From NCBI GenBank assembly GCA_965637545.1, contig OZ281500.1, positions 20,708,001 through 20,772,000 on the forward strand: a stretch of 64,000 nt of DNA, in the 5' to 3' direction. Source of the DNA: Phallusia mammillata. Taxonomy: Eukaryota. A program made the translations under genes and the position numbers. Positions 61,444-63,967 of this stretch are shown here, piece after piece (position 1 is the first letter of the stretch; each line of letters starts with the position of its first letter). The notes beneath the pieces are model-generated. The model saw only the letters and a program-made list of their open reading frames with translations, did not search any database and was not told the origin of the DNA.

Positions 61444-63967
61444 ATGAAGGTAAGATACAAATACAGGTAAAATACGACAGCGCAATATGCCGCAGTATGA
61501 AGTTAGATAATACCTGTACACAAATATCAGCTTTTTAGGCCCATGCTGCTCACACAAGCTTCGATGAAGACAGATACAGCAGACAACTTGAGCATAGAAT
61601 CACCAGACATGTATTCTTGTTGCAGTTGAATATTGCATTCCCGGCGACGGGATGTCAAAAGGTGTTTGAAGTCGACGATGAAAAGAAATTGAGGCCTTTC
61701 TACGATCGCCGTATGGCTCAAGAAGTGTCGGCGGAAAGTCTTGGAGACGAATGGAAGGTACGTTTTGTTTTCGCTCAAACACTTTTCGTACACATGTTTG
61801 CCACCGATGCAGCTAAACAATGCTGTCTTGGTCTTTTCCAAATGTGTTAAATCAAAACTATGGTTAATTAACAGATATCTTTCTGTAGATAGTCTGTCAG
61901 TCACCATATGACAACAAAATATCCACTTGGTATAGTAATTTTTAATAAAAATTGTAGTGTGTGTTTGTCAAAAGTCAAAACTCTGTAATGATTGCAGGGG
62001 CACAACTGCAATAATTGTAAATACTTAAAATGTCATTCATTTAAAACTGATTTTAGTGTTTGGCAATAGGTTTTCCAAAGGTAATTCATGCCACAGGAGT
62101 AGAATAAGGGCTCACAGTCCAAATAGTTTTAACAATAAAATGATGTGGTCCTGTTAACAATAACAGCCCAGCCATAATGCAATCAAACATGTCAAAAAAC
62201 AAGTTTAATTAAAAGTTGAAACAATATATTTGCCTGTGTTTATTGTTGTATTGATGATATGCTTTAGTCATACATTTCAGAATTGTATAGCTTTACCCTA
62301 TTCAATTTTTAAGGATTTTTTATGGGCCTGAAATAAGAGACTTATCGTAAATGTACTAACATTTACAATTCATTGTTCATACATTTTATAAATGATTTTT
62401 GCACAGGGCTACATTGTTCGCATTACCGGGGGCAATGACAAGCAGGGTTTTCCAATGAAACAGGGAGTTCTTACAGCTGGCAGAGTCAGACTTTTGCTAA
62501 GCAAGGTTGGTTTCTGCTCATTTTTTAGACTTCATCAATATTTGAGAGTTTTTTCTTAACATTATCAAACAACAAATATTGGTTGCCTTGGTAATAAATT
62601 TCTGTTAATGGATTAGAAGATATCAGCAAATGCAAAAAAAAGTTACAAGATGAAAAACTAATGATTTATCAGTGAATTGTTATTTAGGGTCACTCTTGCT
62701 ACAGGCCTCGCAGAACAGGAGAGCGTAAGCGAAAATCTGTGCGCGGTTGCATTGTTGATGCATTTCTTAGTGTTTTGAATCTTGTCATTGTCAAGCGAGG
62801 TATGTAACATGCTTTAAAATCATTGCTTAGTTGTGTTTCTACTATTTCAACCTTTATTTATGAACAGGTGAAAAGGAAATCCCAGGCCTTACTGATACAA
62901 CTGTCCCCAAACGACTGGGACCAAAACGGGCAAGCAAAATTCGCAAGCTCTTCATGTTAACCAAAGAAGATGATGTCAGGCGATATGTCATCCGAAGGCC
63001 CCTACCAGCAAAGGATGGTCAGTAAATTTAAATGTTTTGTTGTGTGGTGGCATGGCATATGATGGATAGCTAAATTCTGAACACCAGTGATTGGTATCAA
63101 AGCACTAGATAGTATCTGATGCACATTTGTTTTAACATTAAAATTCAGTGAAGTGTTTTGAAAAATTGTAACCATTGTTTTTGTGTCTTTTACTTTTAGG
63201 CAAGCCAGCAAAGTCCAAAGCCCCCAAGATTCAGCGACTTGTCACACCACTGACCCTGCAGAGAAAGAGACACAGAATGGCGATCAAGCGCAACCGCTCG
63301 GAGCAGGCAAAGAAATCGGAAGCTGAATACAAGAAATTGCTCGCTAAGAAACTAAAGGTATGTTACTGTTATGATTCAAATCTACAGTAAACCTTTGTTA
63401 ATCAGGATTCGATTAATTTGGACAAAACTTCAGGTACAAATGATTCGTAATGTGGTAAGGTTTTAACTAATTGCCATCGGTTAATCTAAATCTTCCAGAC
63501 AATTTTTTGGTCCCAATAGGTCTGGATTAACTGATGTTTAATGAATGATCCCACAAGAACTGTTCCTATTTGTGTAATTTGTACATCAAAATAACAAGTT
63601 AAAATTGTGTTGATACTACAGTGATCAAGCATGTTTTATCTGCACATGTTTGCCACCGATGCAGCTAAACAATGCTGTCTTGGTCTTTTCCAAATGTGCT
63701 AAATCAAAACATGGTTAATTAGCAGATATCTTTCCATATAGATCTTCTGCCAGTCCCCATCTAACAACTGAATGCTCTCTTAAAGTTGTGCTCTTAAATG
63801 GACCTTGTGATTTTATTTAAACTTGTCTAATTGTCCAAATATCGCTTGTAACTTATCTAATGCATTTCTGTCAACAGGAGCAAAAGGAGAAACGTCTACA
63901 GGCACACAAGAAGAGGCGTCTGTCCAGTTTGCGAGCATCACAATCGCATTCCGTTACTTCCCAGTGA
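61444..63967 (+). CDS. RPS6: 40S ribosomal protein S6, 248 aa
   Basis: Exons 61444-61449 (ATGAAG|GTAAG), 61626-61757, 62407-62505, 62688-62799, 62868-63017, 63200-63357, 63878-63967. [59 protein letters not shown]. Confidence 0.98.
61789..61916 (+). ncRNA. Box H/ACA snoRNA, paralog 1 (RPS6 intron 2)
   Basis: Hairpin-hinge-hairpin-tail of about 128 nt; H box AAATCA; ACA at 61911-61913; near-identical paralog in intron 6 with compensatory stem changes. Confidence 0.85.
63385..63543. mobile_element. Pogo/Tigger-like MITE, copy 2 (RPS6 intron 6)
   Basis: TA|CAGTAAACC start; shares GGTACAAATGATT and TTTTTTGGTCCCAA(C/T)AGG(C/T)CTGGATTAAC with 34641-34810. Confidence 0.7.
63641..63769 (+). ncRNA. 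Box H/ACA snoRNA, paralog 2 (RPS6 intron 6)
   Basis: Same architecture as paralog 1; H box AAATCA; ACA at 63764-63766. Confidence 0.85.

Follow-up and report, generated by a model that had tools for sequence, protein, structure and literature searches.

Two intronic copies of a probable SNORA19-like box H/ACA snoRNA in RPS6 of Phallusia mammillata, with a predicted conserved 3′ guide and a possibly re-aimed 5′ guide

Introduction

In chicken, the 3′ hairpin of the box H/ACA snoRNA ACA19 (SNORA19) is assigned to 28S-3128, a position also assigned to the plant snoR87, and the 5′ hairpin is assigned to 28S-3219; the position 2 nt upstream of 28S-3128 belongs to ACA6/snR3, and the host gene is EIF3S10 (= EIF3A) (PMC2653536). 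The two chicken sites are 91 nt apart, which is the same distance as that from human psi3618 to psi3709. In human rRNA, psi3616 is 89% and psi3618 is 95% modified (PMC6182160). EIF3A hosts human SNORA19, the guide credited with U3709 (PMC8759569), and a proposed 18S target of this snoRNA has been experimentally ruled out (PMC8522698). Chicken also has an ACA19-like paralogue, GGgACA37, which lies in intron 8 of EIF3S10 beside the canonical copy; its 3′ hairpin is of the ACA19 type and serves 28S-3128 as well, and its 5′ guide is changed and assigned to U6-86 (PMC2653536).

Tunicate snoRNAs have been described as not systematically investigated; a dedicated ascidian genome survey recovered only C/D families and asked whether many tunicate snoRNAs were lost or had diverged past detection (PMC5006418). 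Here, we analysed a 64,000-nt stretch of the Phallusia mammillata genome (contig OZ281500.1, positions 20,708,001 to 20,772,000, forward strand; hereafter the window), in which two introns of the RPS6 gene carry copies of an H/ACA-like element. Coordinates are those of the window unless stated otherwise.

Results and discussion

The RPS6 host gene

A seven-exon RPS6 gene occupies the right end of the window on the plus strand, with the ATG at 61444 and the stop codon ending at 63967.

61444..63967, + strand: RPS6 coding part, gene read from the sequence, all introns GT..AG
61444-61449, 61626-61757, 62407-62505, 62688-62799, 62868-63017, 63200-63357 and 63878-63967 (stop included), + strand: RPS6 exons

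Exons 2, 3 and 4, each searched singly, match PF01092 (Ribosomal_S6e) at the contiguous profile positions 3-45, 46-78 and 79-114. At the exon 2/intron 2 boundary (61757/61758), which is 30 nt from the first snoRNA copy, the intron directly follows the residues GDEWK. The same intron position is common to nearly all RPS6 exon fragments (P0002-P0028) from unrelated eukaryotic contigs, and judging from these sequences it is old and widely conserved. A 45-aa entry of the protein collection (P0001; 61713-61850, + strand) begins in exon 2, crosses the 5′ splice site and extends into hairpin 1 of the first copy. We rejected it as a spurious gene call, and an exact look-up of this read-through ORF returned no match.

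Two intronic copies with unrelated flanks

The initial annotation had proposed two intronic copies of about 128 nt in RPS6. We place them in introns 2 and 6, both on the sense strand.

61788..61916, + strand: snoRNA copy 1, 129 nt, RPS6 intron 2 (61758-62406), by SNORA19 match and fold
63640..63769, + strand: snoRNA copy 2, 130 nt, RPS6 intron 6 (63358-63877), by SNORA19 match and fold

In intron 2, copy 1 is separated by 30 nt from the 5′ splice site and by 490 nt from the 3′ splice site; for copy 2 in intron 6, these distances are 282 nt and 108 nt. The copies are about 92-94% identical, the higher value being the mean over alignment columns, and they differ by ten substituted positions, two in hairpin 1 and eight in hairpin 2. 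Hairpin 1 may be more tightly constrained than hairpin 2, or gene conversion may have acted on part of the RNA; either could account for this uneven spread. The likeness between the copies ends at the RNA ends: local alignments of the intron flanks score 6, 10 and 14, which is within the range of shuffled sequences, in contrast to a score of 101 for the RNA itself.

Fold, boxes and compensated changes

Both copies fold into a hairpin, an H box, a second hairpin and an ACA, and the minimum free energy (MFE) and centroid folds agree on this hairpin-hinge-hairpin-tail arrangement.

61790..61847, + strand: copy 1 hairpin 1, lower stem 6 bp, upper stem 10/11 bp; pocket strands 61796-61802 (5′ side) and 61833-61841 (3′ side)
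61849..61854, + strand: copy 1 H box, AAAUCA, which fits ANANNA; aligned with the SNORA19 consensus H box
61860..61907, + strand: copy 1 hairpin 2, lower stem 5 bp, upper stem 10 bp with one bulge; pocket strands 61865-61870 and 61898-61902
61911..61913, + strand: copy 1 ACA box, 13 nt past the hairpin 2 upper stem, predicted 3′ end 3 nt on; aligned with the SNORA19 consensus ACA
63642..63699, + strand: copy 2 hairpin 1, as in copy 1 except for a bottom pair G-C in place of A-U; pocket strands 63648-63654 and 63685-63693
63701..63706, + strand: copy 2 H box, AAAUCA
63711..63760, + strand: copy 2 hairpin 2, lower stem 4 bp, upper stem with a small internal loop and a bottom pair G-C in place of A-U; pocket strands 63716-63721 and 63751-63755
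63764..63766, + strand: copy 2 ACA box, 13-nt spacing as in copy 1

The MFE values are -33.6 kcal/mol for copy 1 and -32.6 kcal/mol for copy 2 (z -3.84 and -3.83), and none of 200 shuffled sequences is as stable. When the H/ACA structure is written out as 31 pairs, 96.8% of the pair cells are standard, and shifting the 3′ partners by 1-3 columns lowers this share to 23-48%. The minus-strand reading folds too (z about -3) and was rejected, having neither the boxes nor a covariance-model match.

The features that the initial annotation had read from the letters recur in the alignment. Ten of the 11 upper-stem positions of hairpin 1 are paired, two as G-U; AAAUCA and ACA stand at the box positions of the model in both copies; and the copies have the same letters in all four pocket strands. 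Both of the independent covariations are found as A-U pairs in copy 1 that are G-C pairs in copy 2, one at the base of hairpin 1 (alignment columns 3/60) and the other at the bottom of the hairpin 2 upper stem. In simulations that placed ten random substitutions in the 126-nt core, at least two compensated double changes arose in 0.19% of runs (P about 0.002). A column-shuffle control, which cannot reach significance with two sequences, gave 141/500.

The upper stem ends 13 nt before the ACA in hairpin 2 and 16 nt before the H box in hairpin 1. The target uridine is expected to lie roughly 15 nt (14-16) from the H or ACA box; both distances are close to this value, and one or the other falls on the limit according to how the nucleotides are counted. 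The experimentally determined minimum of guide pairing, which flanks an unpaired U-N, is 8 bp (PMC6049503). Both pockets surpass this minimum, with 5+7 bp in hairpin 2 and 6+7 bp in hairpin 1 for the 28S sites described below. A CAB-box-like UGAG is absent from the apical loops of both hairpins. A box-and-fold scan of the RPS6 introns ranks the two copies first and yields no further convincing H/ACA gene.

Relation to the SNORA19 family

Both copies match the Rfam SNORA19 model (RF00413) over its full length (model positions 1-131), copy 1 with 49.4 bits (E 1.5e-6) and copy 2 with 48.0 bits (E 3.1e-6). The Rfam comparison suggested with the initial annotation thus returns both copies at E about 1e-6, under the curated gathering cut-off of 80 bits. 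At 48-49 bits they are overlooked by standard Rfam annotation, and at gathering thresholds Rfam gives no match anywhere in the window. The remaining Rfam matches, to snopsi18S-1854 (E 7.9), SNORA15 (E 5) and mir-965 (E 1.1), are at chance level and were rejected. When the best candidates of a loose first pass over the 240-Mb genome were scored with the SNORA19 model, the two copies were the sole matches (E about 3e-5 to 6e-5); a model built from both copies (R1), applied in the same way, also returned these two only. With R1 the copies score 161.7 and 161.4 bits.

The SNORA19 consensus aligns with the hairpin 1 lower stem and with both boxes, H and ACA, and in hairpin 2 the pocket strands and the adjoining stem are near-identical to it. 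The 13-nt spacing from the hairpin 2 pocket to the ACA equals that of the consensus. At both covarying pairs, the G-C of the consensus is found in copy 2, which makes copy 1 the derived one. The full-length H/ACA model matches, together with the fold and the 28S complementarity, support the proposal of a duplicated intronic box H/ACA snoRNA in RPS6. As far as sequence comparison can assign them, the copies are diverged SNORA19-like members of the known SNORA19/ACA19 family, and neither a new family nor canonical members; family conservation is read here through a vertebrate-built model, and the covariation through two sequences.

The copies resemble vertebrate SNORA19/ACA19 in length (about 130 nt), in the hairpin 1 lower stem, where copy 2 carries the consensus letters, in the position of the H box, and in a hairpin 2 whose predicted target corresponds to human 28S psi3618 and chicken 28S-3128. 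They differ from it in scoring well under the cut-off, in having a 5′ pocket that fits 28S U2161 rather than human psi3709 or chicken 28S-3219, and in being two copies, not one, hosted by RPS6 introns 2 and 6 and not by EIF3A. Hosting by EIF3A is a trait of the vertebrate SNORA19 members rather than a strict definition of the family, and the movement of snoRNAs between host genes is well known.

It is plausible that the locus has gone unannotated so far, because Rfam is empty at its gathering thresholds and the literature describes no systematic study of tunicate snoRNAs (PMC5006418).

The 3′ hairpin is complementary to 28S U2417

To predict targets, each pocket was scored for bipartite pairing around every U of an rDNA unit taken from this genome (L011). 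The unit carries the following rRNAs (unit coordinates).

1051-2874: 18S
3176-3329: 5.8S
3649-7334: 28S

The hairpin 2 pocket is complementary to 28S U2417 over 5+7 bp, which is its best match over 18S, 5.8S and 28S and is equalled by 1 of 1000 shuffled pockets. In GACUG[U]UUAAUUA, U2417 is the leading U of the UUU run. Because this best target is the site given to the 3′ hairpin of ACA19, we regard hairpin 2 as a conserved guide: on the evidence of its complementarity, it most likely carries the conserved function of the SNORA19 family, with a predicted target equivalent to human psi3618.

Other guides act in the same 28S segment. Plant snoR87 is the listed guide for the position served by the 3′ hairpin of ACA19, which argues that this 28S site has been modified since ancient times; Rfam gave no plant-family match to the copies. 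SNORA6/ACA6 and yeast snR3 guide the pseudouridine 2 nt upstream. They differ from the present copies in using another uridine and another pocket register, and their models do not match the copies.

Taken as a whole, these observations make it highly probable that both elements are genuine box H/ACA pseudouridylation guides of the SNORA19/ACA19 family, produced from RPS6 pre-mRNA and with a 3′ guide to U2417.

A possible re-aiming of the 5′ hairpin to 28S U2161

The pocket letters of hairpin 1 differ from the SNORA19 consensus, and the site equivalent to psi3709 is not among the 12 best targets for any pocket register tried. The pocket instead has its single best rRNA match at 28S U2161 in GGGAAG[U]CGGCAAAC, where the complementarity of 6+7 bp includes two G-U pairs. 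The target sequence is found in 283 rDNA copies. When the genome was searched for psi3709-type pockets with an H box after them, the pattern matched 427 times and its reversed control 261 times, which is uninformative on the ancestral 5′ guide. The comparison supports a division in which only the 3′ hairpin would retain the family function and the 5′ hairpin would have a different predicted target.

Counting from Um2824, psi2826 and psi2830 along the human sequence, we take U2161 to be equivalent to human U2839; its yeast equivalent is presumably U1903, which we take not to be a known pseudouridine. The spacing of the three human modifications (PMC6182160) fits three uridines just upstream of U2161 in this 28S. 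On this inferred mapping, U2161 follows the psi2830-equivalent position by 9 nt and is near the base of the large expansion segment.

Whether this complementarity is used divides two readings of hairpin 1. In one, the 5′ hairpin directs a different pseudouridine, at 28S U2161, a claim that we rate a little below an even chance. Its stronger form, in which the re-aimed 5′ hairpin would actively install a lineage-specific pseudouridine at this position, is offered tentatively. In the other, the RNA is real and the 5′ hairpin is an orphan or structural element, serving snoRNP assembly only, with a coincidental match to U2161; this too is a serious possibility that falls somewhat short of probable. 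A coincidence would suit the finding that 7 of 1000 shuffled pockets reach the score of the U2161 match (24), the 16-nt distance from upper stem to H box, which exceeds the 14-15 nt of the family consensus by 1-2 nt and puts the target at or just past the usual spacing, and the absence of U2839 from the human modification list (PMC6182160). A guide function is favoured by the 13-bp match itself, which reaches the upper stem from either side and is far above the 8-bp minimum, and by the gap to the next-best rRNA site, which scores 16. The pocket strands of hairpin 1 have also stayed identical in the paralogues, yet hairpin 2 gained eight differences.

GGgACA37, which we liken to the present copies by description, shares with them the ACA19-type 3′ hairpin and the altered 5′ guide, and differs in that its 5′ hairpin is aimed at U6, not 28S, and in its position in EIF3A. 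It is, by analogy, a precedent for the modular re-aiming of one hairpin in the SNORA19 family.

Probable retention of both copies

At the pockets, the sole change is from A to C at column 118 in copy 2, where the hairpin 2 lower stem loses its top pair; with its 4-bp lower stem and internal loop, this hairpin is weaker than that of copy 1. Such differences would be expected if one copy were functional and the other a decaying duplicate, and copy 1 in turn has the weaker A-U at two pairs that are G-C in the family consensus. We nevertheless consider decay unlikely. The H box, the ACA, the four pocket strands and the box spacing are kept in both copies, the two score nearly equally with the SNORA19 and R1 models and in their fold z-scores, and the stem changes are compensated rather than disruptive. 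The unalignable flanks, the 92% identity within the RNA and the compensated stem changes together argue that both copies are under selection. From these comparisons, the two copies are most likely old paralogues, both retained by selection.

A reading of the elements as relics without function, such as snoRNA retrocopies or pseudogenes, or as a chance-folding intronic repeat is very improbable: the sharp homology boundaries would also suit the insertion of a processed RNA copy, but the model searches of the genome returned only two copies, both in sense orientation and each in its own intron of a single ribosomal protein gene, with compensatory changes, intact boxes and pockets, a significant match to a vertebrate-built model, and flanks without a visible poly-A tail or target-site duplication.

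Proposed biogenesis and significance

From the sequence, fold, family match and complementarity of the two paralogues, we infer their expression, their processing and the modifications that they direct. The proposed maturation route follows the general biology of intronic H/ACA snoRNAs. Transcription of the RPS6 pre-mRNA would supply both RNAs, and dyskerin, Nop10, Nhp2 and Naf1 would assemble co-transcriptionally on both hairpins, with Gar1 replacing Naf1 later. Splicing and exonucleolytic trimming would then free the protein-protected RNAs from introns 2 and 6. In the nucleolus, the pockets would pair with the pre-28S rRNA on either side of the target U, and the 3′ hairpin would hold U2417 where its upper stem begins, to be isomerised by dyskerin/Cbf5. 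The presence of one snoRNA per intron, the sense orientation and the highly expressed ribosomal protein host all fit this intronic release route.

If both target predictions are true, the family has swapped one target and its host (EIF3A to RPS6) since the tunicate/vertebrate split and has kept an ancient psi3618-type guide. The locus would then be a compact case of modular guide evolution, with one pocket kept since before the plant/animal split, the other re-aimed, and the host changed. It also provides a concrete case of divergence past detection, in which a clear homologue of a vertebrate family falls short of the curated threshold by 30 bits. Tunicates may thus have lost fewer snoRNA families than it seems, the apparent loss being a problem of detection (PMC5006418). 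One new rRNA pseudouridine is predicted, and the general understanding of snoRNAs is unchanged.

Searches beyond this locus

RPS6 loci on seven other eukaryotic contigs (L012-L018) yielded no SNORA19-like element by Rfam or model R1. A 77-aa ORF query, comprising exon 2 and the read-through into hairpin 1, returned 28 RPS6 exon fragments, none with the snoRNA-derived part. An ORF query from exon 6 found no close relative, its best matches being 70% identical and mostly without the intron. These exon-ORF searches reach exon fragments, and full-length RPS6 relatives fall outside the length window of the queries. Two pattern scans of JGI metagenome contigs with the hairpin 2 pocket, written to exclude the vertebrate consensus, gave no match. 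The blank relative searches carry no information on the absence of the element in ascidians.

Other features in the introns and the genome

Intron 5 of RPS6 contains a probable box C/D snoRNA, which ends 72 nt before the 3′ splice site.

63051-63127, + strand: probable box C/D snoRNA with a short terminal stem, C box AUGAUGG at 63059, D′ box CUGA at 63077 and D box CUGA at 63116

Its guide, which precedes the D box, pairs perfectly over 10 nt with 28S 2626-2635, as do 10 of 5000 shuffles. By its pairing, this candidate would direct 2′-O-methylation onto 28S U2629, which we take to be the position methylated in yeast as Um2417. Its sole match in Rfam, to the plant snoR16, is at chance level (E 4.7). 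With this candidate, RPS6 would host three snoRNAs, one per intron. The weak mir-965 hairpin match noted above lies in intron 2 (62230-62305, + strand); at 19.9 bits against a cut-off of 43, it is most likely due to chance.

The pocket pattern search also surfaced two dispersed repeat families (about 59 nt, and about 55-60 nt) on genome contigs C1 and C2, nearly unchanged at many places (for example C1:1317030-1317088, C1:1511881-1511939 and C2:1165629-1165687). These repeats are unrelated to the snoRNA.

The rDNA array, on genome contig C6 at about 21.63-22.68 Mb, comprises about 284 units of roughly 7.5-7.9 kb and includes several irregular spacings. Its units are arranged in orientation blocks: plus, then minus from about 21.65 Mb, plus from about 21.94 Mb, a short minus block near 22.04 Mb, and plus again. 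These blocks could represent a real inverted arrangement or an assembly artefact.
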